Assembly: GCF_031769215.1 (NCBI RefSeq)
Contig: NW_026782051.1
Span: 1,116,001 to 1,180,000 of the forward strand
Length of the DNA: 64,000 nucleotides
Origin: Ylistrum balloti
Lineage: Eukaryota
Reading direction: 5' to 3'
Below the pieces are notes generated by a model that did no database searches, had not been told where the DNA came from, and was given only the letters and a program-made list of their open reading frames with translations. The translations under genes and the position numbers were made by a program. Positions 21,460 through 53,000 of this stretch are shown piece by piece; positions within the stretch are counted from its first letter, which is position 1; every line of letters begins with the position of its first letter.

Positions 21460-23471
21460 TTATTTGCCAATAACACCCCCAGGCTCTTGGATATGGACTA
21501 ACTTTGGCAGTCTCTGTAGCCATAGACTGGTCGAATCTCTGTACAAATGTTGACCTAAAGTGATCGTCGTATTTAGATCAACATAACCTTGTTGTACTGC
21601 GTCATAACCACTCCACACCGGGACATCATTAGAGTTCGGATCCCTGAAAAATATACCAGAAAGATGTTTGATATTAGAATATCACTAGCAGCTTTGCAAT
21701 GAAAACGGTTACTACTGCCAATCTAAGATGACAACCCAAACGTTAGGTAAATGATCGCCTCCGATTTACAATACATGTATAGACGTTAGGCATACAACTG
21801 CATCAGCGATGTCTAATATCTAAACACACATATAAATGTTAGCTTTCTAATTATCACTAGAATCTTGAGTGAAAGGATATATATTCTGTATTCTATTTGA
21901 ATCAGTTAAAATAATTACCCAGTTTTGGCGAAGTTTGTCCAATACTTCAGCATGGTTTTCGAGAGGATGACATCATTGGGACTCACGGTTGTGTTAAATT
22001 TGGTTTGAAAATCTTCAAGACCGAACAAAAATGAAATTTCAGAGGCATGAACTGAAGAGTCGTTTCGCCACCATGGCAAATATATTCGGAGCAATGGGTC
22101 AGGAGATGGACGTTTGAATATGTACTGATACGTTGATGTTCGGGTATTGCCTTCCGCGTGTGCCATGAGTGCTTTTATTGCTGGCGTTAGGAAAAATGCA
22201 TCTGAAAAGGCGTCAATGGCATTGTAACCTGGACTTTCCGACGAAGACCTATAAAATGAACATACCAGATCACTCGGAAGAGTGCTGTTAACTTGAGAGC
22301 CGAAATAAGAAGATACAAAAACCGGAACGATGTAGTTACAGAACACATCGGTAGGGACCCCAACATTTAAGTCGAATTTTTTATATTTAGACATCAGTGT
22401 TAAAATATTTAGAAGAACAGAGCCTTCTGCATTAACATTTCCGGTCATAAAGTCGAGGTTTTGGAAAAACTGAAAACCTGGAGACGTCCTGTTTGTCAGT
22501 ACCTCTGCTGGCGAGTAGTGGAGAAAGTCATTGTCAATGACTGGTCCAAATACGCCATCAATTGTGAGAGGCGGAAGAGTGGGAATAAGCAATATATTCT
22601 GTGCCGCTAGTAAATCACCTGCAGATTTCTCACGCATGCACCTTGTATATGTTAAGGGAATACCGGAAGTGTTTGCACATCCAACTTGAATACCAAGGCG
22701 CTTTGCGGTTGAATGCATTGTACTCGCACCGATATAAGTCAGCGTCGAGAGAGCAATTCCGCTCTGTGCAATGACTCGCTGAAACAGTCCTTGATTGTGA
22801 GGCATTATTGCTTGTAAAGAAACACTAAAGCCCCCAGCAGACTCCCCAAATATGGTAACAGAATTCGGATCTCCACCATAATCGTCTATATTGTCCTTCA
22901 CCCATTGAAGTGCCAAGCGTTGATCCCAGAGGCCATAATTCCCGTGAAGTTCACCCGTGTAAGGTGTGCTGAGGAATCCAAACAGCCCCAGTCGATAGTT
23001 GATTGTTACCACGACAACGTCACCGGTCAAGGCCAGGTATGACCCGTCATAAAACATACCTTGGCCAAAGACATAGCCACCTCCATGAATCCATACCATC
23101 ACAGATTTGCTACTGTTAGAAGTAACATCGCGTGGTACGTAAATATTTAAAATCAAGCAGTCCTCTGATTGGATTAAATTTGGCAGATTTTTTTGAAAAG
23201 CTGGTTGCATCGATTGCATACACGATGGTCCATATTGCGTTGCATTTAGGATACCAGTCCATGGACCTCTTGATTCTGGTTTCGCGAACCTCAACTCACC
23301 GACGGGTGGCTTTGCATATGGAACATTCCGGAATTGGTATACTTTCTCATTTCGAATTTGTTCGACGACACCAACAATGCCCCCGAGCTTTGTGTGTATA
23401 TGTTGCACCTCTATTCCTTGTGTCGTGGAAATAATGGTAAGTAACAGAAGTGCAAGTCGACCAGGTTCCAT
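21460..23471 (-). CDS. Type-B carboxylesterase/cholinesterase-fold enzyme, copy A (about 578 aa, secreted)
   Basis: Exon 23471-21919 plus exon 21643-21460. Signal peptide, SEDCL, WIHGGGY, catalytic FGESAG, NAEG (Glu), HASE (His), YWTNFAKTG/DPN. Confidence 0.93.
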
Positions 23472-24334
23472 GCTTCAAGGAAGATAAATTAGAACTTGTA
23501 AATTACATTATTCAAATATTTGGTACTGAATCTAGAATTTTTACAAAATGAAAAGAATTGATTCCACTATACAGTATTAAGAGATAAATAAAGCTACCGA
23601 TATTAAAATACTCTTGTGTATCTAATACGTATTGCAAAACATTAATCCACCACGGTTATTATAGACTATAAAGGTTCCAGATCAGTCTATCGACAATTAC
23701 AGATACATAAATATGATGTTATATACAGCTACTGGTGTAATTGACTATACAGCATGTGAAATGTTCATTATCGTCACATAACTATGAAACCTCCGCTTAT
23801 ATTGGTGTCCTAAGATCTCAAGAATCCATACAAACTGAATTTCATCGCTGGTTGATCTAGTTGTGTTACCGAAGCTTTATTAACTTCTTTCTTAACTTTA
23901 ACGAAATATCAGATACCGTTATGTTAACGGAATCACAATAGTCATTATATTGATACTAACTAAAAAGAAATAATTAAGGTTACTTTTTATGAAATATCAT
24001 TACAATGAGCAGATATTGTTGAAATTATTTATATGTTTATAGTTCATAAACGACAAAAGCAATTTGATATGTTATATGTTTTTATTAATTTCCCGATTTA
24101 TTTTGACTGACCAATTGGAATTAAGACAAATGCTTAAATAAAATGGAAATGTGATTATTTTGAAATTTGGAAACCTATGAAGTAATCAGATCTTCTTAAA
24201 CGTGGCAAAAGTTACAGGTGTTCCTCGGATATTACTGTTTCGTAAAGTTCCTTGATATTTTATTAGTACGTACTTTATTAATCAAATTCATTTCGAATTA
24301 TTGAACCGATTATTTGTTAAAGAGTATCGCTTAC

Positions 24335-24370
24335 CTTTGTCTCCGCTCTCAGGTCATAGCATTGCTAGCA
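24335..24370 (-). other. Putative non-coding 5'-UTR exon end conserved upstream of the intact esterase copies
   Basis: Donor ...ACAAAG/GT recurs upstream of each intact ATG (exon ends at 24335, 34442, 40178, 50873). An AG acceptor lies a few nt before the ATG of A and D. Confidence 0.5.
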
Positions 24371-24881
24371 AACTGGTGTTAGACCATTATGATAAGAATG
24401 GATTGTCCAATGAGATAAGTTGAACACTGAACGTTTTCAAAGATAAAATGATCTTTAGTTGACTTGTAATTCCAACAGCAGTAAGAAACAACGAAGTGAG
24501 ACAAAATTAAAAGACATTCCACACGATAGGAGACATTTTTATTATATGTCACGTCAAATACTCAATAGTTTATCGGAACATATCGAATTTTGTTTGATAC
24601 CTTGACACGTATGTACGATAAAGGTTGATATATTTTATTTCATAACGGATTGCAGATTTTCTTTTTTAATTGTTATAATATAGTGACAACCTTCAACAGT
24701 ATGTGTCATTAGTAATTATGTTCAGATATATAACTTTTGTGACATGACATGGGTATCCAAAAGGATAATGGAAGTGTGACATCCAAATAAAGAGAGTTCA
24801 ACAATCACATTATATGCAGTATTGTCGTTACTTAGAGTTATCATTGATTAATGATAAGATGTATGACATGCTATATATATA

Positions 24882-26443
24882 TACTGGACAAAATAAGTTA
24901 AGGATCATAAATTGTGACCATAATATCTTTAAAAATTCAAATCATGTATTGCCGGTAATTGCACTCGTAGTTTCTCCAATATGTACCTAAAGTCATGTCA
25001 AAGGTGAAAGCACGTGCATCTGAAGGTCTTGCCGTTCCGCTCTAGTTAACTATGGTGGTGTGAAAAACTGACTGGTCTATTACTACAGAGGAATCTTGCA
25101 GGTTTTGATTCTGTTACTTCTAAGCTAAAAAAAGTTGAATTTGGAAACATTTAATCAATTTGTAACGAAAACTTGAAAAACTAATCATGCGAAGACATTT
25201 AAATGATATGGAAGCCGCGCGAGCTATAGGGCTCCTTCAAGCTGGTCAAACTCAACGAAATGTGGCGGCACAGCTTCATGTTTCTCAGAGCGTGATTAGT
25301 AGGCTATGGAATCGCTATCAACAGACAAATAACGTCCGTCAACGCCCCAGATCTGGACGACCACGCTGTACGACAGCCCGACAGGACAGATTCATTTGCA
25401 TCACGGCACGACGTCAGCGGTTTTTGAGTGCTCCTGTCTTGAATCTTCAGTTTCAGCGTGCTACAAATCTAAGGATTTCATCCCAGACAATCAGAAACAG
25501 ACTCCATGCCTCTAATTTACGAGCTTCCGACCAATTTTATCCAGAGGTCATCGACAATCCAGACATCAATGGGCCACTCATCATTTGAATTGGCAATTAC
25601 GTCATTGGAGAAATGTTATGTTCACAGATATAGGTTTTGTGTTGACTTCCATGACGGTAGGAGGAGGGTATGGAGAACCCAAGGAGAGCGCTATGCAGAC
25701 TGCTGTGTTGTCCAGCATGATCGCTTTGGTGGTGGGTCAGTGATGGTTTGGGCAGGGATCAGTGTTGACTTCCATACAGACCTCTACATCATAGACAATG
25801 GATCTTTAACAGCTGTTCGATACAGGGACGAGATTTACACCCTATAGTAAGGCCCATTGCAGGAGTTGTTGGCCATGATTTTATACTGATGGATGATAAT
25901 GCTCGTCCTCACCGTGCTCGTGTGGTCAACGACTATCTTCAACGTGAAGCAATCGTTCGCATGGACTGGCCAAGTCGTTCTCCTGATCTGAACCCTATCG
26001 AGCATGCTTGGGACACCTTGCAACGCCGGGTTTCAGCTCGACCTAATCTGCCACAGAACCGCCAACAGCTTATGATTGCTCTGCAAGAGGAATGGCAGCG
26101 CATCCCACAGATCAGCCACCCATAAAGGAGCATGTGCAGACGTTGCAGGGCAGTTATTGATGTCAACGGAGGTCATACTGCCTATTAAACTGCCAATTGC
26201 AGTTTGATGAGTTTTCCTTGACATGATTAACTTGCTCTACTTCCTCTTACACTTTGATTTCAAGGGTGCTGTTACTCAGGGTTATCTGCTCTTGGTAGCA
26301 ATTACCATAAATGAATTTGTTTTGTGTAATTAAAGACTAAAATGAATGTTCTGTCATTAAAATTTAAAATATAATCATATTATTATTTGTATGTAAAACT
26401 GCACTGTTTCAAGTTTATGATCCTTAACTTATTTTGTTCAGTA
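24882..26443 (+). mobile_element. Tc1-like (DD34E) DNA transposon, non-functional
   Basis: TIR TACTG(G/A)ACAAAATAAGTTAAGGATCATAAA at both ends with TA duplication. Frameshifted transposase 25187-26188 (MRRHLNDMEAARAIGLLQAG..., [20 protein letters not shown]...[13 protein letters not shown]34E). Confidence 0.95.
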
Positions 26444-26958
26444 TATGTACATCACCAGGACAAACGGACGATATTGTGCATTCCTTAAGTTTGGTCGGCA
26501 TTACTCAGGGTTATCTGCTCTTGGTAGCAATTACCATAAATGAATTTGTTTTGTGTAATTAAAGACTAAAATGAATGTTCTGTCATTAAAATTTAAAATA
26601 TAATCATATTATTATTTGTATGTAAAACTGCACTGTTTCAAGTTTATGATCCTTAACTTATTTTGTTCAGTATATGTACATCACCAGGACAAACGGACGA
26701 TATTGTGCATTCCTTAAGTTTGGTCGGCATTACTCAGGGTTATCTGCTCTTGGTAGCAATTACCATAAATGAATTTGTTTTGTGTAATTAAAGACTAAAA
26801 TGAATGTTCTGTCATTAAAATTTAAAATATAATCATATTATTATTTGTATGTAAAACTGCACTGTTTCAAGTTTATGATCCTTAACTTATTTTGTTCAGT
26901 ATATGTACATCACCAGGACAAACGGACGATATTGTGCATTCCTTAAGTTTGGTCGGCA
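26272..26958. repeat. Exact 3 x 229-bp tandem triplication spanning the Tc1 right end and host flank
   Basis: Units start at 26272, 26501 and 26730. Each contains the right TIR, the TA and about 55 bp of flanking DNA. Confidence 0.95.
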
Positions 26959-28281
26959 ATTCAAATAAACAGAAAATTCCCTACAGTTACACATTTCAAT
27001 TTATTCACAGTACTAAAGTATGAGATGATATCACTACTTTTATCACGGACTTTGATAAAATATTGCCATAATTGTAGTTTTCTCGAAAATATAAAAGACT
27101 TTAGAGATTACACGTTTTTCTTATGATACATTTGATATACATAAGTCATGATTTAGCATCTTGGTTCACTAATGAAATTATCTCAATCCATCTTCCTTCA
27201 CGTGTAGTTGTGACCTTTGTGTACAGGTTAATAACGCAAAGCACATTTGTATCACGTGCTGTCACGTTAAGAGCCCACCATACACCTTTATACCTGTGTC
27301 AAGGTATGCCATAAATAGAGTGTCAGTGTGGCAAATGGTAACCTGAACTTATGGTATTTACATGTCACAGTTGATTCGATATTTAACGGCCTGTTACCAT
27401 TATTACGGTTTTCGTGGAAAAAAATCGTCCACGGACGGATTAACTCGTTGCATAAGTTTTCAGCAGGTTCGGATTGAAGAAAATTATGGGGAAGTTTTTA
27501 TGGTCGTCATTGTGATCTCTTTTTCTTTGCGAGATATGAAGCTTAACGTGTTTAATGCGCATTAGTTTGCCTGTTGGTTCCATTAATGTATATCTATTTC
27601 TCATTCGAGAAGGTGACGTTACTAACTTAAATTGACCAAGGTTTATCTGGCTAGTGTCGTCGATCAAGCTAAAGACGCTCACTCTTCCTGAACACCTGGT
27701 AATATTCTTAGTACTTTTTCAGAAGTTTCTGTTTTAATCATTTTTGAATTTCGGTTAGGATTTTAATATGTTAGTACTTTTCTGTATTTTTTCTTTGTGA
27801 TGATCAGCACAAAGCAAAAAACAGGAGAGGATGCTTTGCTTTGAAATTAAGCTGAGATCGGCTTCATGAATGTACATGTTAGTATTTTCTTGTTGGTTTT
27901 CGGTGTGACTGTTCAAACTGTAATCTCTAACGTAGTAATTTAGAAGAATAATGAAACATAGCCCATGACAACATGACTATATCAATATCGCTGAGCATTA
28001 ATTTCTTTTAATAAGGGAAAAATCTAATCAACAAAAATATGAGCTTTGACCATGGAACTGCATTTATACTGTATACCAGAACATTTTATTTGGCGCTTCA
28101 CCGATTATCAGCACTATGTTATAGGTCTATGAACTTTAGAGACAATAGGGAAATCTTCTCCAACATGTACATGATCGTAATGGTATTTTTTGCACTAGTG
28201 TACGATACAAACCAAAACTCGTTATTTTCATTGTTTGTGAGAAAGCGTTTGCTTTAGTTTTTGTCTAGAACAACGTAGACA

Positions 28282-29236
28282 TTATTTCCCCATGGCACCA
28301 CCTGGTTATTAACCGTAGAGTAACTTTAGCAGTCGGTCTAACCACAGATTGAATCTCGAATCTCCGTAATGAGGTGTTTGTAGCATCAATATCTATATTA
28401 CTCTGGTGTACTCATATCCACTCCATATCCGGACGTCATTGAAATCAAACTGTTTATATTTTGATAAGTGTTAATATACCTAAATAAATGGAATTTTCCG
28501 CATTTTCAAATCCGGTCGAGATTTTGGAAAAACTGAAAGATTGGATACGTCCTGTTGTTCAGAACCGGATTTGGCGACGAATGAAGATAGTTTCAGTCAT
28601 TGTGAGAGATGGAAGAGTAGGCATTGTCAATATATTCTGTGTCGCTAGTAAATCATTTGCTGATTTCCAAGGCTTGCACCTTGCTTATGTCACTTCAACA
28701 TTTGTACCCAGTCGCTTTCCAGTCGTGAGCATATTAGTTATACCAAAGTAAGACAACTATGAGAGAACTCTTCCGCTCTGTGCAATGACTCGCTGAAACA
28801 GTCCTTGATTATGTGACTTATTATTGCTTATGAGAAACCCATTGAAGTGCCAAGCGTTGATCCCAGAGGCAATGTAAACAGCCCCAGTCGATAGTTGATT
28901 GTTACCAAGACAACATTATCTGTCAAGACCAGGCATGCCCCGTCATAAAACATACCTTGCCCAGTTACATAACTACCGCCCTGCATCCATTCCATTCAAT
29001 ATTTGGTATTAGTCCAATTTGCGTCTCTTTAGGGTACCAGACCATGGACCACTTAATTCTGGTTTGCTAAATCACAGAACACCAATGGATGCTTTTGCGT
29101 ATGGTATGTTCCGAGTCTGGTATATTTTCTCATTACGAACTTGTCCCCAACCTTATTGCGTATATGCTGCACCTTTATCTCGTGTGTTGGGGGAAATAAA
29201 TACCAGTGAAAGAAGTGCGAGGATATACCCCATCAT
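28282..29236 (-). pseudogene. Carboxylesterase pseudogene, copy B (D-like)
   Basis: Patches homologous to copy D (GGSYVTGQGM, TCAAACTGTT.ATATTTTGATAA). Multiple deletions remove the GESAG serine and join exon 1 to exon 2. In-frame stops are present. Confidence 0.88.
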
Positions 29237-29825
29237 GCCGCAAAGATATTTATGCATATTAGACCTTGAAATATGATTATGAGATTTGACCAATGACACA
29301 TTCTCATATTCTGAGGTTTTTGTTTTATTTGTGACCTATCACACCTACCACGGTCAGTGTTGTTGAATTTTGGTGACATTATATCAATATCTAATCTGGA
29401 ATGTTTACAAAATCATGAACATTAATTTTACTATAAAATTTTCAAAGAATGATAATGCAAACAAATTGATGCTCTGTATCTGACACATGTTTCAAATACT
29501 GTATTTTTTTAAAAAAAATTAAGTATCTGTGCAACAATTTTTTGACAGTGGTTTTATCTATTTTTCAATTTGCGAAACTATGATGATATCCCCGTGAATA
29601 TGAAACGCTACCTACACATCTAATCTTTTTCATGACTAAATAATCGCTAATTATTCTAGATAGATTTTTCGCATAATTTAGAATCCTAAGCTTCTGAAGA
29701 ATTCATACGTTATTTGTTTGCTGGTTGGTCTAGTTGTGCACATAATACATTATCCAAACTTCTTTCTTAACTTAAACAAAACAGCGATACTTTCTCCTAA
29801 CTATCCCTTCCAGTCATTGTGACGC

Positions 29826-30050
29826 TTATGTCGAACATTTATTAGATCAAAACTTGACTATAGTTCCATAGTATATGGGTCAGTAGGCCAATCGAAACTT
29901 AAGAAGCTGGTCCTAACCACAATTAAAGTCTGCAACTGGCATAGGACGTTTTTTGAACGACACCAGTGATCATTTATGTAAAATTCATCGAACCATATAT
30001 CTAGAGAAAAGCTCTCTACAGTTCGTTGTCCGTGGTTAAGGAAAGAACGG
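29826..30050 (+). mobile_element. LINE reverse-transcriptase C-terminal fragment (I/Jockey-group-like)
   Basis: Translates LCRTFIRSKLDYSSIVYGS...KL then, after a frameshift, HN*SLQLA..F*TTPV..YV..EP. This matches the RSKLDYG...GAFRTSPVESLYVE pattern of I-group LINEs. Confidence 0.7.
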
Positions 30051-31504
30051 GAATATGTATAACTGTAGATACAATTGAGACGATAGCAAGGAGCATTTGC
30101 TACTCGTTCCAATCACAATTGCAACAAGTCTGTTAGAATATGCTTTTATTGATACTGATATCCTGGATGTTCCCGCCGAAGTGTCAAGGTGATATGGCCT
30201 ACTAACTTATGACCATTTTTTTCTTTCGTTCCACTCTACCATGTAAGATTGTAAAGTATTTGTGAACGACTGAGATTTTCTTGTATCATTATATTTATAA
30301 GTGTAATGTTTCCAACATGAGCTAAGCATCAAGTCGGCGTTATGAACAATCATTTTAGGAATCCAGCGACATATTTCACATTCTTCGCGTCAACAAAAGA
30401 TATACAAAGCATCGATAAACCCAGTTTATAAACTATGTAAGTAAGAAAGGAAAGCTTTTTCTTTGTTCGATATCAATGTTCAACCATTTAAAACATTCAT
30501 GGTATGAAACCATCCTATCTGGACTATATAATAAATATTTTTCACGCTTGACACAAGTGTAAAGTACATTGATGGAAAAATGAAGGTTGTAATTAAACTG
30601 AAATGTAAGAAAATATCTATTGGCTGTAGGGTTACCCACAGATAAGATAGTAGGAAACAGTTAAGTTTGCCTATTCCACAAAATTATAGATAACATATTA
30701 GTAGCACTGTTTTCAGAAAAGTTTAAGTACATAATGGATTTCGTGAATGCCCTAGGTAGGAAATAATGTAAACACAGACAGCTATACATACTGGAAGTAC
30801 GTACAACTAAACAGAGGTACCAGATAATCGTGACTGAAGAAAACATCTGAGTAGATTAGTAGAATATAGCTACAACTGAGATCAGCCAGGGAAGTGTCAT
30901 TTACCAACTTCTGTTCTGTGGAAAGATTTTAAATATGAATTTTGTTACCATATCGATATTTTCACTTTTGTTTGAGTTGAATATGTTAAACATTCGATGC
31001 TTTTATAATCTTAAAACTTTAATGTGGGCATACTTAATAGGTTTCCTTTTATTACAGCCATGAATGACACAGCTTTTCTTTTGTTCTACACGGTTTAGAT
31101 TAAGGCGGCGTATTTCCAAATTTTTATCTTTAATTCGGCCCTGATTCGCCGTTTTTCTTCCGTGTACGTGTAGGGATAAAGTCATTGGAATTCATATAGT
31201 TTCATGACATTATAATGAAGATTTAGCACCAGATTCAATGATAATAAATTAAGCAAAATTATTATGAACGAGATTTCATATCTGTTTAAATTATTAATTA
31301 AATATCTAGTTTCCGTCATTGAAATAAAATATATACGTATTACATTAAAATATACCATGAATGTCATCATTGACGATGATTGATCTGACACTTGTAATTA
31401 ATGTATATTCTTTGTAGGGTGTTTCAATGTGTGTATGAGACAAACATCAACTATTATTGTGATAAAGTTTGAATGTTTTTTAATAGACGTTAACGATGTA
31501 GATT

Positions 31505-33505
31505 TCATTTGCCAATAGCACCATCGGGTTCTTGAGTGTGCAGTAATTTTGGCAGCTGATCTAACCACAGACTGGTCGAATCTCCATACAGGTGTTGTCC
31601 AGAGGTGATCTTAGCATCAAGATCGATATAACTCTGGTTTACTGCGTCATAACCACTCCACATCGGGACGTCATTTGAGTTTGGATTCCTGGAATATATT
31701 GCAAACAGCTCCTTAATGGTTTAATATCATTACCAGTTTTTGCATTGACAAAAAAAAAAAAAAAAAAAAGAAAAAAATCTCCCTCGAGTATTGACCTAAT
31801 CAGTCAAATGTCGTTATCTTACTAAATTAATTACCTTTGACGTTTAAGATTTACATATATATACCTCATTATAATTTGCAAATGCAGTAATATATCTTTA
31901 AGAGGAAAAAAACATTCCAATATTCAGTTACATAAGAAATAACTACCCAGTTTTGGCGAAGTTTGTCCAGTATTTCTGCATGCTTTTTGAGAAGCTGATA
32001 TCATCGAGTCCCACGCTCATGTTAAATTTACTAGGAAAATCTTCAATATTGAACAAGAAAAAGAGTTCGGAGCCATGAGCTGAAAAGTCGTTTCGCCACC
32101 AAGTCGGGTAATCTAGGAAGGACATATCAAGTGCTTTTCGTTTGAATATGTACTGATACGTTGATGCTCGGGCGTTGTCGTCAGAATGAGCTATGAGTGC
32201 CTTTATCGCTGGGACTATAAAAAACACATCTGAGAAGACGCCAATGACATTGTTGTCTACGTGGCCGCGCGACGAGGTTCCATACAAGGAACAAATTAGA
32301 TCACTCGGAAGAGTGCTATTGATCTGAGAGCTGAAATAAGAAGATAATAAAACAGGTACGATGTAGCTACAGAACACATCGGAAGGGACGCCAACATTTA
32401 AGTCGAATTTTTTATATTTCGATATCATTGTTAAAATATTAAAAAAAACAGAGCCTTCTGCATTAACATTTCCAGTCATAAAGTCGAGGTTTTTGAAGAA
32501 TTGAAAACCTGCAGACGTCCTGTCTTTCATAATCTCTTCGGGTGATGAGTGAAGAAAGTCATTGTCAATGACTGGCCCTATCATTTCATCAATGTTGAGC
32601 GGTGAAACAGTGGGCGTAGTCACTATATTCTGTGCCGCAAGTAAATCGTCTGTAGATTTCCCACGCATGCACTCTGCATATGATGTCGGAATACCGGAAG
32701 TGTTTGCACAACCAAGTTTTATACCGAGCAGCTTTGCAGTGGTATGCATATTACTGCTACTAACGTAAGAATAGCTTGACAAGGCACTTCCGCTCTGTGA
32801 AATGACTCTTTGAAACAGTCCTTGATTCTGTGGTACTATTGCTTGTAATGAAACGCAAAAGCCCCCAGCAGACTCTCCAAATATAGTTACTGAATTGGAA
32901 TCCCCTCCATAGTCGTCTATATTGTCCTTCACCCACTGCAGTGCCAGGTGTTGATCCCAGAGCCCATAATTCCCGTTCAATTCACCTGTGTGAGGTGTAC
33001 TGAGGAATCCAAACAGGCCCAGCCGATAATTGATAGTTACCACAACAACATCACCCGTTAAGGCAAGGTATGACCCGTCATAATACATACCTTGTCCTAA
33101 GACATAGTCACCTCCATGTATCCACAACATTACCGACTTCCTAGTATTCGGAGATATATCACGTGGTACATATATATTCAAAATAAGACAGTCCTCTGAT
33201 TGGTTTAAATTTGGCAAGTATTTATTATAAGGGGGTGGTAACATCGGTTGGATACAAGATGGTCCAAATTGTGTGGCATTTAGTGTACCAGCCCAAGGAC
33301 CGCTCAATTCAGGTTTGGTGAATCTCCGACTTCCGACGGGTGGTTTGGCGTATGGAATGTTCCGGAACTGGTATACTTTCTCATTCCGAACTTGTTCGAC
33401 AACACCAACAATGTCCCCGAGCTTTGTGTGCATATTCTGCACATCGATTCCGCGTGACACCGAAAGAATGGCCAGTATCAGAAGAACATTTCGGCAGGGC
33501 CCCAT
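31505..33505 (-). CDS. Type-B carboxylesterase, copy C (about 580 aa; oxyanion loop HGGD)
   Basis: Exon 33505-31947 plus exon 31688-31505, intact frame. Signal peptide, SEDCL, WIHGGDY, FGESAG, NAEG, HGSE. Confidence 0.93.
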
Positions 33506-34761
33506 TCTGGAATGATGTATCTACAAATAAGAACGTCTTTGTGAAAGTAATCTATTTTCGGTTTAATGGTACAAAGCAATAGTGTGGATTTGGAGTAACT
33601 TAAGCGTTGGTGTTGTATGACCTGACTTTGAAACCTTATGGCTTGTAAGCTCGGTGAAAAATTCAGGATTTATAGGTTGACGTAAGAACATTCTTTCGAC
33701 AATGCGTTTCATCGTGCTGACCCTTATAAACCATTTTACATAAAAAAACAAACAAGCTGTAAATTCGCGAAATTGCAGTACACTTCAGCCATACAAGTAA
33801 ACAACATTTCGAAGGTATCAAATATGAAATTTTACGTAGTAGGTTCAATGAAACAATTGAACTTTGTAATTAATCACTTACTCTAATTCATGGGGGTATA
33901 AATGTGTACTTTATCTAAAGTTGTTCTTATAGATAAATTAAGATCGCTCATTATGACTTCAATAGAAAATTTGCTTGTTGACTAAATTTTATGACGGCTA
34001 TGCGACATCAGGATTCAGTTTCAGCGCCTTTCTGTTGCTACGATAAATCTTTACTGAAAATATTACTCCGAAAGTCTTGGGTAGAATTCAGTCAAAGATG
34101 TCATGAATTATCGTCACATATCACAAATTTAGTGTCTCGATCTTTGAAAAATATTTTGCTTTTGTGAAAATTGCGAAAATTCAAACACCGCGACGAAAAT
34201 GAATTAATGAATATTTCTTATTACGCATATTCTGAAGACGCCTCCTAGACTTCAAAATTTAGGCTTTTCGTGTCATTGACGAGTCCTAAAATTTCATACT
34301 TGGTGCGTTACTGTATCTAACTCTAAATTTGTATTAAAAGGAGTTATTTACGTGTGCGTCTTTTGTACGGCTTCCATCTCTAACGTTTCAAAAAATCATC
34401 ACCGATACAAAAAAGTCTATTATTGTTAAAGGACGATTTACCTTTGTCTGCCTTCAAACGCAGGCCATAGAAGTACTTACAAACCGATGTTCGACCTTTT
34501 ACGACATGAATGTATTATTTGATAAGATAAGCAGATAGGTTACCTTTGCAAGGTCACCTAGAGTGAAATGAATGCATGCATGCTCTATTTCAGGAATGTT
34601 GGTGATAAAGAAATCGTAAGCTGAAACAGAAGCTTTGATACCAATTTTAACAGAAATTCACTTCAAGTGTCCTTCTTTAAAGACTTGAATAGAATGATTG
34701 GTAAAGAATTACTTAGGTGTGGTTATTGGTTAACGCTTGATATATATACATAAGTATAATA

Positions 34762-35075
34762 TATATGTGTTACACCACATAACACCAGATATATATATTA
34801 TGTTTAACCACATAACGCCAAATATATATACTGTGTTACACCACATAACACAAATTATTTATGTTTTGTTTAACCACATAACAACAAATGTATATACTGT
34901 GTAACACTACATAATGCTATATATATATATATATATATATAATGTTTAACCACATAACACCAAAACTATATATTATGATTAACAACCTCACAACAAATAT
35001 ATATACTGTGTTGCACCACATAACACCAAAAATATATTATGTTTAACCACATAACAACAAATATATATATATATA
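34762..35075. repeat. AT-rich degenerate minisatellite (about 30-35 bp, ACCACATAAC core)
   Basis: Alternating TGTGTTACACCACATAAC and TGTTTAACCACATAAC units separated by (TA)n. One more unit lies at about 37211-37235. Confidence 0.8.
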
Positions 35076-37205
35076 GATATTACACAACGAATGGTTGTTG
35101 GATACGACGTTTATTTCACTCGAGTTCATTCATATTTCGAGATCACAGGCGGTAGGCTAAGACCAACACATGTATACGTTTGTAAACAATTTGCTGACAT
35201 ATGCAAATATGGCGTAGAGATATCATTCGGAGTGAAAAGGCTCCATTAAACATTAAAAAATATTATGATAAATAATTTATTTCTTTATTATTTTCACAAT
35301 TTTAAAGTTTACACATAATAAAACAATGACGATTAATTGTCTACATAATCGTAGAAAATCGCGGACTATACTAGGCGCGCTTTTATACAGTCACATATAG
35401 TGGTGTCTTCTGGTTCCAGCCGGAAACTTCAAACTCAATCACTGTCAGAATCAGAGTACAGCACCCTTGGTCTGGGACGTTTATAGACGTTTGTGTTGTT
35501 AATGTTTATTGTGAATGAACCACCGTGAATAGGACCTGCAAATACTGAAGTAAGGGTACCGGTGGGATTTGCAGACACAGTTGATTCAGGATTTGGAGGT
35601 CTGACGATGACGCTTGCACTAGATGTGCTATTAGCTTTAGTGAAAGGCCTGTCACCAAAATGATCCAAGCATGACAATATCGCTCTTGAAATCATCCGGT
35701 GCTGGTTGGTGTTTAAAGTTGAGTAACTGTTGATACTCTGGATATTCTTGTGCCCGGAAATCTTGAGGATGCAGGGAATTACATAATTAGGCAACGCTTT
35801 ATAGGACCAATGGAAGTAGAGATCTAGTCATTGTCTTCTCTAAGCCAGACAGTGATGCATTGCCCTGTATTATGAAAGCAGGAGATTTTTTTTTTTATAA
35901 ATTTATATTAGTGTTAAACTGTTTGGGATTTAATTTCTTTAAACAAGGTAAGTGTCCATTTACTCGTAACGATTGTAGACCCTAATGATCAAGTTGAGAT
36001 ATTTCAATGTGAAAATTGTTTGTACCTGAATAATCTGATTTGGGGGTTATCCTTTGTCATTGAGTTTTTGTACAAGGTACTTCCTGGCACTGTGTTTTGT
36101 CTTTTTCCGTTATCGTTACTCCCAGACTTGTTGATCAGACCTGGTTATATAAAAAACAGGCATAAATCTAAACTCCGAATATGAACTGAATAAATAACAA
36201 GCAATTTAATCTAGGCCTATATATGCACCATTGCGACATCCGAAATAATTAAAGAAATTTATTACTTTGGACTGGAATTATGCTCAAAAGATTAATTTTG
36301 ACTTCAATCGACTAAAATTATGGAAAGGCTACAATGTTAGGCCTAGGTGTAAGCAAGTGCACTGTACAACAATGTATAAATGACGTAAGTTGACGTAAAA
36401 GGGGTGGAGTATAGGATTTGTAAACATACACTGGGTTTTGTTTACATTCCAGTCTCATTTATCTGCATTCTCTGCCATAGTCTTCATAAAAGTCCCTAGT
36501 TTGTTAACGCCAACTGGTTGAGACTTGTACCACTTGCTTGATTTGTCACAGTTTGTATTAGTTACGATATAGTAGGGGGCTTCAGGGTTACGGTACGTAA
36601 GCGGGCGATTTACTTGGTAGGGTTTATAAGTTGCGACAGAGCATCGTGATGGGTTGTCGGGGGTAGCCCAGGCATGCGGAGGAACTTCTCTAACATATTT
36701 GGGGTTGGAACCCGGTCTAGTTTTAGTCTGACGCTCTCGGAACTCAAGATATTCATTACTTTCAGAATCTTTACATAATTTCACATCACCCCATGTCTCG
36801 GTTTCGGTAACATTCCAAAATATACCGTATTGTTCAACCAAATTGTTCTAAGCAAACTTTCGGCATTTATACAGCCTTTCTGTCCAGATTCGTATAATTT
36901 GTCGATCTCGTCATCGGATATAGCATCAGCCGTGTTTTCACGATTCCCTTTGCCCTCACGTTTCAGGTTTTTTTATTGTTTAGATCGGATAACATCCATA
37001 ACATTCACCTAAAGCCTATTCAGTTCAGCCATGTTGACAGCAGACGATATCAAACAAATCGCACGTGGAACAAATCACATGAGTGAAAAAAGTAGTTCTG
37101 GTCAAAGTTCACCAATCATGTATCCGGAAGGCCATATACCACTAGTGGAATATCACTTATATTTATCCAACACCCTGAGAGTGGAATAAATTAAAGTAGA
37201 ATGTT
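35076..37205 (-). mobile_element. Crypton-type (DUF3504/KCTD1-ZMYM-related) tyrosine-recombinase element, degenerate
   Basis: Minus-strand pieces: LKREGKGNRENTADAISDDEIDKLY...TIWLNNTVYFG; WGDVKL...ERQTKTRPG...RC..TYK...WYKSQPVGVNKL..MA; KHSARKYLVQKL; ISGHKNIQSINSYS. These supply the K, HxxR, H and Y residues of a tyrosine recombinase. Frameshifts and a stop are present. Imperfect subterminal inverted motifs (GTTGGATA...ATTTCACTCG) occur at both ends. End coordinates are approximate. Confidence 0.8.
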
Positions 37206-37606: not shown

Positions 37607-39571
37607 TTATTTGCCAATACCACATCCAGGCTCTTGGGTATTGATTAACTTTGGCAGTCTCTTTAGCCATAGACTGGTCGAATCTTCATACAGATGTTGA
37701 CCTAAGGTGATCGTAGCATCAAGATCGATATAACTCTGGTGTACTGCGTCATAACCACTCCACATCGGGACATCATCAGAGTTCGGATTCCTGGAAAATT
37801 TGGCAAACAGCTTCTTAATGGTTTAATATCATTAGGAACAGTGTAAATACAGAGTAGCCTATGGCATGATGTTGTTATTAGATAAGTGATTGACTCACAA
37901 CTACACCTGCTACGTCTCGTTGATATCTTTAAACACATACATTAATTAGCTAAATATTACCAATCTAATGTCTTAGGAAATACAGCCTCCTTATCCTTTC
38001 TGCAAAAGATAAAATAATTACCCAGTTTTGGCGAAGTTGGTCCAATACTTCTGCATTATTTTTGAGAGGCTTACATCAGCGGAACTCACGCTTATGTTAA
38101 ATTTGGTTTGAAAATCTTCAAGACCGAACAAGAAGAAGAGATCGGAAGCATGAGCTGAAGAGTTGTTTCGCCACCATGGCGGGTGTTCTTTAACTGGAGG
38201 GATAGGCGATGGACGTTTGAATATGTACTGATACGTTGATGTTCGGGTATTGCCTTCCGCGTGTGCCATGAGTGCTTTTATTGCTGGCGTTGTGAAAAAT
38301 GCATCTGAAAAGGCGTCAATGGCATTGTAACCTGGGCTTTCCAACGAGGACGTATAAAATGAACATACCAGATAGCTCGGTGTAGTGCTGTTAACTTGAG
38401 AGCCAAAATAAAAATTTACAAAAACCGGGACGATGTAGTTACAGAACACATTGGTAGGGATGCCAACATTGAAATCAAACTGTTCATATTTTGATAAAAG
38501 TGTTAATATATTTAGATAAATAGAACCTTCTGCATTAACATTTCCGGTCATAAAATCGAGGTTTTGGAAAAACTGAAAGCTTGAAGACGTCCTGTTTACC
38601 AGGATCTGTTCTGGTGACGAGTGAAGAAAGTCATAGTCAATGACTGGTCCAAAAGCGCCATCATATGTGAGAGATGGCAGAGTAGGCATAGTCAATATAT
38701 TCTGTGCCGCTAGTAAATCATCTGCAGATTTCCCACGCATGCATCTTGTATAAGTTACGGGAATACCGGAAGCATTTGCACATCCAACATATGTACCCAA
38801 GCGCTTTGCAGTCATATGCATATTAATCATGCCAACGTATGACAACTTTGAGAAAACACTTCCGCTCTGTGCAATGACCCGCTGAAACAGACCTTCATTA
38901 CGTGGCATTATTGCTTGTGATGAAACACTAAAGCCCCCGGCAGACTCTCCAAATATGGTAACAGAATTTGGATTTCCACCATAATCGTCTATATTGTCCT
39001 TCACCCATTGAAGTGCCAAACGTTGATCCCAGAGGCCATAGTTCCCATGTAATCCACCCGCGTAAGGTGTGCTGAGGAATCCAAACAGCCCCAGTCGATA
39101 GTTGATTGTTACCACGACAACGTCACCGGTCAAGGCCATGTATGACCCGTCATAAAACATACCTTGCCCTGTTACATAACTTCCTCCATGAATCCATACC
39201 ATTACAGATTTGTTATTGTTGAAGGAAATATCGCGCGGAACGTAAATATTCAAAATTAAACAATCCTCAGATTTATTTAAATTTGGCAAAAAATTCTGAA
39301 ATGAAGTTTGTATAGGTTGCATACACGATGGTCCAAATTTGGTCGCATTTAAGGTACCAGACCAAGGACCATTTGATTCCGGTTTTCTGAATCTCAGAGC
39401 TCCAATCGGTGGTTTAGCGTATAGTATGTTCCGGAACTGATATACTTTCTCATTACGAACTTGTTCGACAACACCTACAATGTCCCCGAGTTTAGTGAGT
39501 ATATGTTGCACCTCTATCCCGCGTGTCGTGGAAATAATGACAAGTAGAAATAGTGCTAACCGACCCACCAT
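37607..39571 (-). CDS. Type-B carboxylesterase, copy D (about 577 aa; oxyanion loop HGGS)
   Basis: Exon 39571-38022 plus exon 37790-37607, intact frame. SEDCL, WIHGGSY, FGESAG, NAEG, HASD. Confidence 0.93.
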
Positions 39572-40812: not shown

Positions 40813-40974
40813 NNNNNNNNNNNNNNNNNNNNNNNNNNNNNNNNNNNNNNNNNNNNNNNNNNNNNNNNNNNNNNNNNNNNNNNNNNNNNNNNNNNNNNNN
40901 NNNNNNNNNNNNNNNNNNNNNNNNNNNNNNNNNNNNNNNNNNNNNNNNNNNNNNNNNNNNNNNNNNNNNNNNNC
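40813..40974. other. Assembly gap (162 N)
   Basis: Run of n characters. Confidence 1.
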
Positions 40975-42079: not shown

Positions 42080-43317
42080 TCATTTGCCAATAGCACCGCC
42101 GGGTTCTTGAGTGTGCAGTAATTTTGGCAGCCGATCTAACCACAGACTGGTCGAATCTCTATACAGGTGTTTTCCAGAGGTGATCGTAGCATCAAGATCG
42201 ACATAACTCTGGTTTAACTGCGTCATAGCTACTCCAAATCGTGACGTCATTTGAGTTTGGATTCCTGGAAAATATGAAAAACAGCTTCTTAATGGTTTAA
42301 TATCATTACCAGTTTTTGCACGGACAAAAACGAAATATCTTCCTCAAGTATTTAACCAATCAAATGTCTTTATCTAATAGGTAGTTAATTATCTTTTACG
42401 TCGCACGTTTACATATCTGCCCAGTTTTGGCGAAGTTTGTCCAGTATTTCTGCATGTTTTTTGAGAAGCTGATATCATCGAGTCGCACGTTCATGTTACA
42501 TTTGGTAGGAAAATCTTAAATATTGAACAAGAAGAAGAGTTCTGAGCCACGAACTGAAGAGTCGTTTCGCCACCAAATCGGGTATTCTTGAAAGTTCGGC
42601 TCCAGTCCCTTACGTTTGAATATGTACTGATACCTTGATGTTCGAGCGTTGTCGTCAGAATGAGCTATGAATGCCTTTATCGTTGTGGTTATAAAAAGCA
42701 CATTTGAGAAGACGTCAGGTTTTGGAAGAATTGAAAACCTGCAGACGTCCTGTCTTTCATAACATATTCTAGTGATAAGTGAAGAAAGTCATAGTCAATG
42801 ACTGGTCTTATCATTTCATCAATGTTGAGAGGTGAAAGACTTTATTCAGTGCAGCAAGTAAATCGTCTGTATATTTTCCAAGCATGCATCCTGCATATGA
42901 TTTCGGAATACCGGGAGTGTTTGCACAACCAAGTTGAATACCGAGCAGCTTTGCATATCAGAATCTGAGCAGGCCCAGCCGATAATTGGTAGCTATCACA
43001 ACAACATCACCCGTTAAGGCCAGGCATGACCCGTCAAAATACATATCTTGGCCTAAGATATTTTATATTAGGCAGTTATGTGATTTGGTTAAATTTTACA
43101 AACAATTCTGAAACGGTGTTAGTTTCGGTTGCATACAGGATGGTCCAAATCACGCCGCAGTCAATGTTCCAGAACATGAACTAATTAATTTTGATTTGGC
43201 GAACCTCAGAGCGCCAATGGGTGGTTTAGCGTATGGAATGTTTGAATATTGCTCTTCTATCCTGCGTTTCGTTGAATAAATGTCCATTAAAGGAAGTGCG
43301 ATACGACAGACCTCCAT
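42080..43317 (-). pseudogene. Carboxylesterase pseudogene, copy E (3' part C-like, 5' part A/D-like)
   Basis: ATG remnant at 43317. Deletions remove the HGG loop and GESAG. The donor is mutated to GC and exon 2 (42264-42080) has a +1 insertion. Confidence 0.9.
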
Positions 43318-44318
43318 GCTCTTATGATATATTAGACTTTGAACAAGTATGGTTTTAAGAACTATTTTGTTTCTAGCCAACAACGCTTACAAAATCATAA
43401 TTGATCGATCACACTACATCATATTCAGATGTATTTATCATTTGATAAACTGTGTATCTGGTAAGTGTTAAAGCATGTCAAACCAATCACGGTTCCATAT
43501 CATCCTTTTACTGTGACAATCATCTTTCGGTTGTTTTTATTCTCTCAGTTTTGACACTATGACATTATATTCAGTCACCCTTGTTTTTTACTTTTTCTCA
43601 TTAGACATCAATAATGATAGTCCCTCCCAAGGCCGTATAAACTATTATTACATACCTTCATGGTAGAGATGTCCATGTCTATTAAAAAAGGAAAGGAAAA
43701 GAACGGTGATACAGTATAATGGTTGTATTTTGTTTTTGAAAAACACGCAAATGCGGTAATCTAATTGGTTTTGTTTTTGATTTTTTTTTTCATTTTCCCA
43801 ACAGACAGTCTAGACAGCATACATACTTGCTTTCATACACGATAAAATATACGCACATAAGGATATATTTACATTTTGACTTCGCTCCGCCTCAATGAAA
43901 CTAGTAATGTCACTTCGTTGCATTTCCCAATGAAAGAAGTGGGTCGCGTGCTTTTTTCTGAGCGACGAATCACTTTCTGTCGGCGTAGGAATACATTGTT
44001 TACTCTTGAGATCTGTTTTTATACCGTCTACACGTTTGTAGGTCACGTAGGTACGAGACAATACCTGTGTGTCATTACATCAATGAAAATATTATTCTGA
44101 TTGTTTGTGTTGCTTTTACACCTTTTAACATCATATAATCTGTATATCCTCAATATTGAACAAAGAATTAATACAGTTGCAGCCGCTGTATCTATCATCG
44201 GTCGTCTGCTCAATCATGGGGGATTACAGCGACAGCTCAGATATTTCTTCCGATATAGAATCAACCGAGTTAGGAGAATTTGCTGTCCAGTTACCTGAGA
44301 TTTTACTCAGCCCTGGTA

Positions 44319-48050: not shown

Positions 48051-50010
48051 TTATTTCCCAATGGCACCACTAGGCTCTTGGGTGAGGAGTAGTTTTGGTA
48101 GTCGATCTAACCATAGACTGATCCATTCTCCATACAGGTGTTGACCTGAGGTGATAGTCGTATTTAGATCAACATAACCCTGTTGTGCTGCATTATAGGC
48201 ACTCCACATCGGAACGTCATTAGAGTTCGGATTTCTGAAAAGTGTAGAGATAAATAATGTAGAATTTTTGGGAACTCTGAACTTAAAAACGCGGTTAACA
48301 CAACAAAGATTAAGATATAACCCTTATATAGATGCCATTGTAAATCAGTTGTTATATTTATATGTGAAAGTTGAATATACAAATGTTTGATTTTCAATGT
48401 TTCAATGTGTTAAATAAACGTGCAATTCTTCTTTTTAGCTCAAATAATTACCCAGTTTTGGCGAAGTTTGTCCAATACTTCAGCATGATTTTCGAGAGTC
48501 TGATATCAGCGGGACTCACGCTCATGTTAAATTTGGTTTGGAAATCTTCAAGACCGAACAAGAATGATAGCTCGGAAGCATGAGCTGAAGAGTCGTTTCG
48601 CCACCAAGACAGGTGTACTTTAAAGTCTGGATCTGGCACCGGGCGTTTAAATATATATTGGTACGTTGATTTTCGGAGATTGCCTTCGGAATGTGCTATG
48701 AGGGATTTTATCGTAGGTGTAATGAAAAACGCATCTGAGAAGACGTCAATGGCGTTATCACCTTCTTGGCCTTCCGAAGAAGTTCCATAAAGGGAGCATA
48801 TTAAGTCACTTGGCAAAGTGCTGTTAACTTGAGAGCTGAAGAAGGTATTCACAAAAGTTGGTACGATTAAGTTACAAAATACTTCGGTAGGGATTCCGAT
48901 ATTCAGGTCGAATTTATCATATTTCGATATCTGTTTTAATAAACTCAGGAAAACTGAGCCTTCTGCATTTACATTTCCAGTCATAAAGTCGAGATTTTGG
49001 AAGAATTGAAATGTTTCCGATGACTTGTTTGTTAATAAGGTTTTGGGGAACGACTGAAGAATATCATAGTCAATTATCGGTCCAAAAACGCCATCAATAG
49101 TGAAAGGTGGGAGATTAGATGCAGTTACTGCCTCTTGTGCCGCAACTAAATCGTCTGCAGATTTTCTACGCATGCATCCAGCGTATGTAGTTGGGATACC
49201 GGAAGTGTTTGCACATCCAACATGAATGCCCACAAGCTTTGCAGTCGTATGCATATTACTACTATCAATGTAGGAAAGAGCTGAAAAGGCACTTCCGCTC
49301 TGTGCAATGACTCGCTGGAAAAGTCCCTGGTTTTGGGGTATTATCGCTTGTAAAGAAACACTAAATCCTCCAGCAGACTCCCCAAATATGGTTACAGAAT
49401 TTGGGTCCCCACCATAGTTGTCTATATTTTCCTTCACCCATTGCAGTGCCAGGCGTTGGTCCCAGAGACCGTAGTTCCCTTTTAGCTCATTCGTATGAGG
49501 TGTGCTGAGGAATCCAAACAGCCCCAACCGATAATTGATAGTTACCACAACAACATCACCCGTTAAGGCCAGGTATGACGCGTCATAAAGCATACCTTGG
49601 CCAACGATATAAGCACCTCCATGTATCCATACCATCACCGACTTCCTGGTACTCGGAGATATATCACGTGGTACATATATATTCAAAATTAGGCAGTCCT
49701 CTGATTGGTTTAAATTTGGCAAGTATTTATGATAAGGGGGTGGTGACATCGGTTGGATACAAGATGGCCCAAACTGTGTGGCATTTAGGGTACCAGCCCA
49801 AGGACCGCTCAATTCCGGTTTGGTGAACCTCCGACTTCCGACGGGTGGTTTGGCGTATGGAATGTTCCGGAACTGGTATACTTTCTCATTCCGAACTTGT
49901 TCGACAACACCAACAATGTCCCCAAGCTTTGTGTGCATATGTTGCACTTCGATTCCGCCTGACATCGAAAGAATGGCCAGTATCTGAAGAACAATTCGAC
50001 AGGGCCCCAT
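48051..50010 (-). CDS. Type-B carboxylesterase, copy F (about 580 aa; oxyanion loop HGGA)
   Basis: Exon 50010-48452 plus exon 48234-48051, intact frame. SEDCL, WIHGGAY, FGESAG, NAEG, HASE. Confidence 0.93.
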
Positions 50011-53000
50011 TCCGAAATGATATATCTACAAATAAGAAAGTTGCAACAGAATGTCTCTGTGAAAGTAATTTATTTTCGGTTTAATGCTACATAGTAATAC
50101 TGTGGATTTGGAGTAGACGAAACTTCAGCTTTGGTGTTGTATGACCCGACTCTGAAACCACATGATTGGTAAGAATTTTGCTATATAGGTTGACGTAGGA
50201 ACATTCTTGAGGTTATGCGCAGTTCTGATTGGTTCCCGACATATAGCATTCCAATCGTTTCATCGTGCTGACCCTTATAAACCATTATACATTACAAAAC
50301 AAATCAAACAAGCTGTAAACAACATTTCTAATTAATCATAACGAGATGAAATTTGCATAGTAAATTCAATGAAACTATCGGACGTTTGCATAACGAGTCA
50401 TTAATCATTTTCTCTAATTCATGGAGGTATAAATGTGTCCTATATCTAAAGTTGTACCTATGGTCAAAAAAGAGCGCTCGGTACGACTTTGTAACAAGTT
50501 TACTTGTTTTACTAAATTTTGTGAAGACTTTTCTATTGCTATGGCAAACCTCTAATATATAACTCTGAAAGTCTTGGGTAGAATTCAACAAAGGTTGTCA
50601 TGACATACCGTCATATATCAAAGATGTTACGTCTTGATCTTGGAAAAATATTATGCTTTTGTGAAAATTGCGAAAATTCAAACACACCGACGTAAATGAA
50701 TAAAGGAGAATATTTCTTCTTGCGCATATCTAGAAGACGTCTGTTGCGCAATGAGAAGTGCAGCACTGCTAAATTTATATCGAAAGGCGTTATTCACGTA
50801 TGTGTCTTGTACAATTTTTGAAATAGCAGGTAGTACACACTATTGGTCTATTATTGTTGAAGAACGACTTACCTTTGTATGTCTTCAAACGCAGGCCATA
50901 GAAGTACTATCGAACCAATGTTCGACCTTTACGACATGTATGTATTATTTGATAAGATAAACAGAGCGGTTACCTTTTCGAGGTCACTGATTGTAAAATG
51001 AAGGTATGTTCTATTTCAGGAATGTTTGTGATAAAGAAATAGTAAGCTGAGACAGAAGCTTTGATACCTATTTGAACAAACATTCAGTTCAAGTGCCCTC
51101 CTGTTTCATTTTTTAAAGACCTGAACAGATTGATTGGTAAAGAATTACTTAAACATGGTCATGGGTTAATTTTTAGCGAAATGGCCACCGTTTTCAGTCT
51201 CCATACCATTCCTTAACGTCAAAACTGCCAATTAAATGACAACTCCATCCGTCTCATTTGTGTCCTCCTGTTTCACTACTACCATTAATATATAGATAAA
51301 TGTCTAAGTTCTTACAAGATGATTATTTTACGGAAACAATACAGAGCATGCATGTGGGTAAATTGTGATAGTAATCACAATATACATAACGGGTGGAAAT
51401 GGCATGGGCATTGTTGAAATTGCTATAGGATTCTAGAGGGATAAGTCCAGGTGTCCCTCATGATAAACGTTTTCTACTTCGTAAATGACACTCATCTTGT
51501 AAACCTGTGCAAGTCCAATAATTGTACTAAAGACAAAGAAGTGAATAACACTTTGCAGTACAAATTTGGAGTTTGATCATGTATAGCGAAATTAAGCTAC
51601 ATTATACAGCTTTTCGGTCCTTTCGTCCTTTTAGGAAGCTTTAGTGAAGCTAAAGGTCTAAATAATCGAAGCCTGTGAGGCAACTTAGTAACACCTGGGT
51701 TGTTAAAAAAATATATCAATGGATGCAGGGATGCACTTAACCCAAAACATAATCCCGTCAATATCGAACAATTTCAAACGAACGGTATGTATGTGTTTAG
51801 ATTCCATTCTATATTTCGTGTGAATTAAAACGTGGAATGCAGATTACAGCAACTACTGTCGAGTAGATGTCCGTCACCAGAATCCTCCCTTGCAATTACG
51901 AAGGGTTGCACAAGTAACATACTAATGAGTACCACCATTTAATTCAAATTTAAAATGAGATATAGTATTTTTGTTTTGTTTCTTTTTATCAGTTCCAAAA
52001 TCAATAGGCACATCTATGAACCAGTGGCAATCTTCGTATGATTTTGAGAAAGATCCGTCCAACATTTTCCAAGACACGGAGGTAATATTAAAACGGACAG
52101 AGGGACTGACTACGGACCACAGACCGCGGACGTAAGGCGATTTGTATAGCCAGCTATCTGATTATGATGCTGAGATTTAACTATATGTAATATATGTTTG
52201 AGATGAAATCATAGTAATGACATCACTAGCGACCACTAAACACGTCGAACGACAGACAGCATTGTGAAATAGAAAACCTCCCTATAAGATGAAGGCGAAA
52301 CAAACCTATAATCATCCATAATGTTTATACATCTGCGTCTCTCGAATAATCAGCGACATAGTTAACCGTAGATTGATATCAGGAAGACTACTACCAACAT
52401 ATAGAAACTTCTCAAACGAAGAATTGAAAAAAATCAAGGTTATCGTACAGCTTTTCAGAAGCTGTTTGCTATAAACATTGTAAGTAAATGTTACATAATG
52501 AAGGATTGATAGAAAAACGCTATCTCAGTAAATTTTAATTCACAGCAATAATAAATTGGTATTGAAGCTCGCCATTTTACGACAGAAAGTTTCTGTAACT
52601 GATGATAGACGCGTTCTTTCAAGTTTAGAGCGAAGTGTTTTAGTGTGCAGTGTCGGAAACAAGGCTCTTGGTAGTGAGAGGGGATATACATAAAACAACC
52701 ATCCTCTTCAACTATCTTCCTTTATCTCCTCCTAACACATGAGAGTTACAGCAGACAAGGAAGGCAATTATGTAATACAGTTATCGAAGTTACCTCCCCT
52801 TTGACCATCTGTGGATGGTTTACATACAGCTACCTATATGTGTATACATAACAGCAGAGTAGAAAAGAAAAGAAGAGGAACAAGTGTTTATGATTGGTGA
52901 AAAGCCATTTGGAGGTCTTTAGATCAATATTAATTATATAGTATATCACATCACAATAGACTGTAGATTTGATTTATAGGTAATGAGAGTAAGAGCTGAA

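Follow-up and report, generated by a model that had tools for sequence, protein, structure and literature searches.

Organization of the esterase array

The window analysed here, a stretch of 64,000 nucleotides from the genome of Ylistrum balloti (assembly GCF_031769215.1, contig NW_026782051.1, positions 1,116,001 to 1,180,000), a saucer scallop of the family Pectinidae, contains an array of six copies of type-B carboxylesterase genes, all located on the minus strand. Four copies, termed A, C, D and F, are intact and two, B and E, are decayed. The first exons of the intact copies hold open reading frames of 517–520 amino acids, which share a pairwise identity of 72–80% in an alignment of the four. 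These frames end with the sequence NFAKTG, where the Pfam profile of the family reaches only position 472 of 515, and each of them is followed, behind a phase-2 GT-AG intron of 218–276 nt, by a second exon of 184 nt that was not mentioned in the original prediction. The second exons were located by searching with the C-terminus of the closest homologue, and their boundaries read GG/GT...AG. The full spliced coding sequences comprise 578 (A), 580 (C), 577 (D) and 580 codons (F), with the 1743 nt of copy C being intact and its splice sites canonical. Numbered from the first letter of the window, the features of the array are:

21460–21643, minus strand: copy A, exon 2
21919–23471, minus strand: copy A, exon 1, with codon 132 GGC (Gly) at 23076–23078
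28284–29218, minus strand: pseudogene B, D-like fragments with AGT (Ser) kept at the oxyanion site
31505–31688, minus strand: copy C, exon 2, last 60 codons and stop
31689–31946, minus strand: copy C, GT-AG intron, phase 2
31947–33505, minus strand: copy C, exon 1, from Met1 to the first two bases of Gly520, equal to residues 1–520 of XP_060067070.1
32075–32077, minus strand: copy C, His477 of the catalytic triad
32456–32458, minus strand: copy C, catalytic acid Glu350 (NAEGS)
32870–32872, minus strand: copy C, nucleophile Ser212 (GESAG)
33107–33109, minus strand: copy C, Asp133 codon GAC, third residue of the HGGx oxyanion motif
37607–37790, minus strand: copy D, exon 2
38022–39571, minus strand: copy D, exon 1, with codon 131 AGT (Ser) at 39179–39181
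42080–43374, minus strand: pseudogene E, C-like with 85–94% nucleotide identity and deletions, oxyanion codon lost
48051–48234, minus strand: copy F, exon 2
48452–50010, minus strand: copy F, exon 1, with codon 133 GCT (Ala) at 49612–49614

An exhaustive protein search identified the RefSeq entry XP_060067070.1 of Ylistrum balloti, a protein of 1139 residues named 'acetylcholinesterase-like', whose residues 1–560 are identical to spliced copy C and whose residues 562–1139 are identical to spliced copy A (578/578), which confirms the splice junctions. The entry fuses the neighbours C and A (21460–33505) by leaving C inside its second exon and skipping pseudogene B, and it reflects read-through transcription or else a wrongly merged gene model. 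Other elements are found between the genes. The region between A and pseudogene B (25187–26224) harbours open reading frames with Tc3/mariner-type transposase helix-turn-helix domains (PF01498 and relatives), probably a decayed transposon, and a frame on the minus strand between C and D (36455–36841) matches DUF3504 (E 5.6e-12) and probably belongs to a mobile element. Between D and pseudogene E lies a stretch of 161 N (40813–40973), reflecting an assembly gap or a mask.

Fold and family of the encoded proteins

The four intact copies match the COesterase profile PF00135 with 413–428 bits at a gathering cut-off of 27. All of them contain a complete Ser-Glu-His triad in the contexts GESAG, xEGS and H, and the disulfide cysteines are present. 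An AlphaFold2 model of exon 1 of copy C (mean pLDDT 93.6) superposes on butyrylcholinesterase (BChE), CES1, neuroligins and Torpedo acetylcholinesterase (TcAChE) with Foldseek TM scores of about 0.8 and VIA-align Z-scores of 47–50. In TcAChE, the choline-binding tryptophan W84 is part of the omega loop between the first disulfide cysteines. A Trp of this type is absent between Cys84 and Cys106 in A, C, D and F, which are thus not cholinesterases, despite the name of the RefSeq entry. Neuroligins provide the best sequence matches in the PDB but contain GSGAG where the alignment shows GESAG retained in the array copies, which are therefore not neuroligin-like. The array proteins stop 60 residues past the esterase domain, without the transmembrane segment and cytoplasmic tail of neuroligins. 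Since they start with a hydrophobic leader and carry no ER-retention tail at their C-terminus, we infer that they are secreted. Their closest relatives are bivalve esterases and not members of the dipteran alpha-esterase clade, and no alpha-E7 chain appeared among the best 60 sequence matches in the PDB or among the best 50 structural matches. The homologue search returned no transcript-derived protein that would be more than 68% identical to the array copies.

The residue at the oxyanion hole

The array had attracted attention by the proposal that its four intact members carry four different residues at a single position of the oxyanion hole. In copy C, the plus-strand positions 33107–33109 read gtc, which corresponds to GAC (Asp) on the minus strand, flanked by the codons GGA GGT for Gly-Gly and TAT for Tyr. 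The motif is WIHGGGY in A, WIHGGDY in C, WIHGGSY in D and WIHGGAY in F, and the recomputed coordinates of the variable codon, encoding G132, D133, S131 and A133, are identical to those given previously. The alignment equally bears out that the flanking residues and the Ser-Glu-His triad are conserved in all four copies. A canonical motif is found in A (GGG), D (GGS) and F (GGA), and is missing in copy C (GGD).

The predicted equivalence of the site with G119 of TcAChE and G137 of the blowfly esterase is supported by several alignments. HMMER pairs D133 of copy C with the Ser of the neuroligin HGGS motif, the Ala of the mouse Ces2e HGGA motif and Ala108 of the YGGA motif of bile-salt-activated lipase. 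The third residue of the motif has been assigned as A107 in the esterase pNBE, G117 in BChE and G137 in the blowfly enzyme (PMC4100338). The ranges of the alignment to Torpedo AChE place Ser212 of copy C on residue 200, which fits a placement of D133 on G119, and on the level of the fold, the AlphaFold2 model superposes on TcAChE (1amn) with a Z-score of 48.3.

Reality of the GAC codon

With the 5' third of C being 93–97% identical to F, a collapse of the two copies or a mis-assembled paralogue chimera, and with it an erroneous Asp codon, would be conceivable. A run search returned five further sequencing runs, all of which behave as DNA, with an even coverage of the intron and flanks. We have compared contigs from four of them, behind which stand five samples or labels, over positions 30800–34300. 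Contigs of all four span 33035–33177 and list no variant at 33107–33109, the sole difference listed in this interval being a third-position change at 33068, although such contigs can mask rare variants and five weakly supported variants, at undisplayed positions, lie somewhere in the 3.5 kb. The codon is thus no assembly error, and the corresponding codon of F reads GCT and not GAC. Consequently, we consider it extremely improbable that the Asp originates from faulty sequencing or assembly. In each of the four runs, the contig word depth between 33023 and 33490 reaches about double the flanking level, and contigs from the near-identical 5' part of F may have been placed here too.

Rarity of the Asp within the family

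Four different residues in the four copies are found in 8 of the 577 ungapped columns of the alignment. Among these, column 133 is the only one that is conserved in the family, with an entropy at the 29th percentile across 120 homologues compared to the 70th–95th percentile of the other seven. At this position, the 120 close homologues contain Gly in 77, Ala in 26, Ser in 15 and Arg and Asp in one case each. With Gly, Ala and Ser accounting for 118 of 120 sequences, the difference between the four copies is mostly ordinary variation. The initial emphasis on four distinct residues is therefore justified insofar as the residues are real and the Asp is rare, but Gly, Ser and Ala are the three normal states of the family. 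On a tree of 113 homologues, the site has changed its state at least 24 times. In a set of 150 more diverse representatives, about 8% of the domains carry another residue (including N, F, R, K and D), and most of these domains have lost the nucleophile.

Only one further homologue, P0091, was seen to combine the Asp with an intact Ser nucleophile. It is a 501-residue esterase from Logan SRR22034055 (L001:108-1613) with 29 cluster members and the motifs WIHDGDY and GHSAG. Like copy C, it contains the Asp at the same oxyanion position, but it is only 38% identical and has a second Asp inside the motif. A region-limited word search for further HGGD proteins yielded 19 candidates and no new Asp-bearing protein, and a literature search found no paper on bivalve esterases with a Gly-to-Asp exchange at this site. 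Judged from these sequences, an Asp as in copy C is rare (roughly 1% or less) without being unique.

History of the array and gene conversion

In the phylogenetic tree, A, C, D and F group together with 99% support, a monophyly that could be inflated by concerted evolution, and their sister is a lone Mizuhopecten gene with Ser at the site. This relative, the carboxylesterase 1C-like protein of Mizuhopecten yessoensis (P0001), is 68% identical and, with its 579 residues, has the same C-terminal exon content. Unlike copy C, it contains the ordinary WIHGGSY motif, and it is a single gene in the list of homologues rather than part of an array. With Ser in the nearest outgroup, the ancestor of the array need not have been Gly. 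In mosquito ace-1, the mutation G119S confers insecticide insensitivity. Copy D has a Ser at the same motif position, but it is not a cholinesterase and its Ser is a normal state in the scallop clade (P0001, P0008, P0009, P0012, P0013 and pseudogene B). Ser being the outgroup state, a G119S-like insensitivity change is ruled out for copy D.

Pairwise dN/dS values of 0.19–0.29 at dS values of 0.40–0.92 show that the four genes are under constraint. The same dS values, together with introns that cannot be aligned between copies and unrelated proximal flanks, identify the duplicates as old. Around the site, C reads GAC TAT GTC where A reads GGC TAT GTC, and a single transition from the Gly codon is thus sufficient to generate the Asp, compared to three changes from AGT and two from GCT. 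Pseudogene B keeps AGT as found in D, and pseudogene E is uninformative, its homology to C picking up again only at CDS nt 401, directly after the codon. Within the clade of the window, we count three state changes at the site over 0.75 substitutions per site, compared to 0.30 expected from the rate of the family (Poisson P 0.004), in a test that is post hoc and based on parsimony, which undercounts changes on long branches. The site looks to have changed about ten times faster in the array than in the family on average.

The genes are of mosaic composition, with 23 consecutive polymorphic sites shared by C and F and 32 by A and D (p < 0.0002 in each case). Two segments of copy C are relevant in this respect:

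33151–33418, minus strand: core of the C-F high-identity tract, CDS nt 88–355, about 97% identical
33095–33112, minus strand: oxyanion-loop patch, C codons 132–137, CDS nt 394–411, an island of A-D divergence within a conversion tract

Past the core, the identity of C and F drops stepwise from about 97% to about 78% over nt 355–515, and a single change point fits best at nt 515. A sharp chimera junction at the oxyanion loop is supported only in part, as the interval between nt 355 and 515 brackets the loop without pinning a junction there. No donor copy can be named for the loop of C either, which between nt 361 and 450 differs from A by 15 and from F by 14 positions. Within the homogenised A-D segment (nt 366–660), the loop (nt 394–411) contains 10 polymorphic sites, of which 8 differ between A and D, compared to 15 of 63 in the remainder (Fisher p 0.001). 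Both synonymous and nonsynonymous differences are kept in the loop, which thus looks more like a patch that was spared by, or withstood, conversion than like a site of many fresh mutations. Upstream of the genes, C and F (34778–36000 and 51352–52505, approximate) are alike only at a distance of about 1.3 to 2.5 kb, with 83% and 68% identity, and their proximal 1.27 kb are unrelated, though the first 355 nt of the coding sequence are 93–97% identical. The notion of a diversifying detoxification array, as it was initially put forward, is thus supported in its first part by a loop that looks unusually diversified, both in the three changes compared to 0.30 expected and in the A-D island. The role in detoxification is putative, and the proteins look secreted and not ER-retained.

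The terminal branch of copy C raises the question of whether its constraint is still in place. C has accumulated 27 unique nonsynonymous and 24 synonymous changes, the most nonsynonymous ones in the array, compared to 10/19, 16/24 and 25/38 in the other copies (51/81 pooled), and this higher ratio could reflect relaxed constraint, although the excess is not significant (p 0.096). The main rival to a functional hydrolase accordingly holds that the Asp is neutral or mildly damaging in a redundant paralogue, which would be a weakened enzyme, a stoichiometric binder or an incipient pseudogene. Such decay has already affected the sister copy E, the closest relative of C. It would also agree with the frequent nucleophile loss in homologues with residues other than Gly, Ala and Ser, and with two further peculiarities of C, namely an unpaired Cys217 (32855–32857) found in this copy alone, five residues past the nucleophile (GESAGGFC), and the loss of two N-glycosylation sequons that are kept by the paralogues (C residues 328 and 472–474). 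Conversely, the coding sequence of C with its splice sites is undamaged, its pairwise dN/dS of 0.23–0.26 resembles that of the other copies, its catalytic residues are complete, nearly all columns conserved in the family are preserved and the codon is identical in the contigs of all four further runs. In light of these features, we regard a relaxed constraint on copy C as unlikely.

Possible functional implications of the Asp in copy C

The replacement of Gly by Asp in the oxyanion hole is the textbook example of a single change that turns a carboxylesterase into an organophosphate hydrolase, as known from the mutation G137D in alpha-esterase 7 (E3) of Lucilia cuprina and its counterparts in Musca domestica and Cochliomyia hominivorax. 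The resemblance to copy C is close. In both cases, Asp replaces the last residue of the HGGG motif in a type-B carboxylesterase with a Ser-Glu-His triad, and in both a single G-to-A exchange in a GGN codon is sufficient. Different from the fly alleles, which are recent insecticide-selected polymorphisms of one gene, the Asp of C resides in one paralogue of an old array and is invariant in the samples seen. Moreover, copy C is not an orthologue of alpha-E7. A second comparison is offered by laboratory mutants of the same structural position, the engineered BChE variants G117H and G117D and the Bacillus subtilis pNBE variants A107H and A107D, and the model of C superposes on BChE, including the crystal structure of G117H (2xmb), with Z-scores of 47–50. 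In these enzymes, either Asp or His raises dephosphorylation (PMC4100338).

The consequences of the exchange depend on its context. G137D consistently lowers the kcat of the native esterase reaction, and its large gain in dephosphorylation is confined to blowfly-like contexts, where it depends on the second-shell residues Met308, Phe309 and Tyr457 of LcalphaE7, with little gain found in orthologues at 38–40% identity (PMC12956860). Activity was gained in one out of eight Helicoverpa esterases (PMC3812244). The variants pNBE A107D and BChE G117D showed gains, whereas G143H in hCE1 did not, and the equivalent change also failed in snake AChE (PMC4100338). Given this dependence, direction and size of any catalytic change in copy C are unpredictable.

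These results bear on the proposal that copy C would be a natural phosphotriesterase-like enzyme, in which Asp133 would act as general base to activate a water molecule and dephosphorylate Ser212, thus permitting organophosphate hydrolysis with multiple turnovers. The proposal is an analogy that draws on an intact triad, on a motif position and residue that are the same as in LcalphaE7 G137D and on the spontaneous reactivation that was raised by Asp in three unrelated scaffolds, alpha-E7, human BChE G117D and pNBE A107D (PMC4100338). It is weakened by the poor gain in alpha-E7 orthologues and the described second-shell requirement (PMC12956860), by the gain in just one of eight Helicoverpa esterases (PMC3812244) and by hCE1, where the equivalent His was without effect (PMC4100338). 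Further arguments against it are the lack of an obvious selective agent in the life of a marine scallop and the old age of the duplicates (dS 0.4–0.9), though the Asp itself may differ from them in age. We find it unlikely that copy C is such an enzyme, and hold the same reserved view of any measurable Asp-dependent turnover of organophosphates. The chance that this turnover would be the trait selected for in C is low.

We return to copy C as functional hydrolase, which offers the best reading of the data. In the explanation that we favour, if only by a narrow preference, the locus would be, in Ylistrum balloti, a lineage-specific tandem array of two-exon genes for secreted type-B carboxylesterases, composed of old duplicates that would be held by purifying selection and patchily homogenised by gene conversion, with the active-site oxyanion loop kept different between copies. 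Gly in A, Ser in D and Ala in F represent the three normal states of the family, and the Asp of C would be a derived state, with a codon that a single transition separates from the GGC found in A. From its sequence, copy C most likely continues to function as a serine hydrolase. What the data show are the sequences with their intact and constrained genes, the rarity of the Asp and the divergent loop island, and from there on the catalysis of C is a matter of inference. Judging from alpha-E7 G137D, BChE G117D and pNBE A107D, a carboxylate placed beside the oxyanion hole would lower the turnover of ordinary carboxyl esters and shift reactivity or substrate preference, and it may also speed the dephosphorylation of organophosphate adducts. 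A more far-reaching version would assign to copy C the role of a naturally evolved and long-maintained oxyanion-Asp serine hydrolase with truly different chemistry, whose loop is guarded from conversion by selection, which we judge to be distinctly unlikely. If true, its chemistry could be the hydrolysis of non-carboxyl esters, such as phosphoryl or carbamoyl esters, perhaps with metabolites of dietary algae as substrates, and copy C would be a natural non-insect counterpart of the neofunctionalisation of blowfly G137D.

Significance

The observation that motivated this study is correct and reflects a little more than chance, and the Asp, as a genuine and rare variant found in nature, deserves a test at the bench. 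To speak of a specificity switch or of an enzyme of detoxification would be premature. If the Asp turns out to be merely tolerated or damaging, the array would be one more expanded esterase family of bivalves. Its relevance lies in the fact that, in a lineage remote from flies, an intact paralogue carries the blowfly-type residue, which is invariant in the samples examined and accompanied by sisters with Gly, Ser and Ala. Copies A, C, D and F therewith constitute a natural panel for asking which contexts tolerate or use a carboxylate at this site, and the array could help in finding bivalve esterases with activity towards unusual esters from the diet or the environment.
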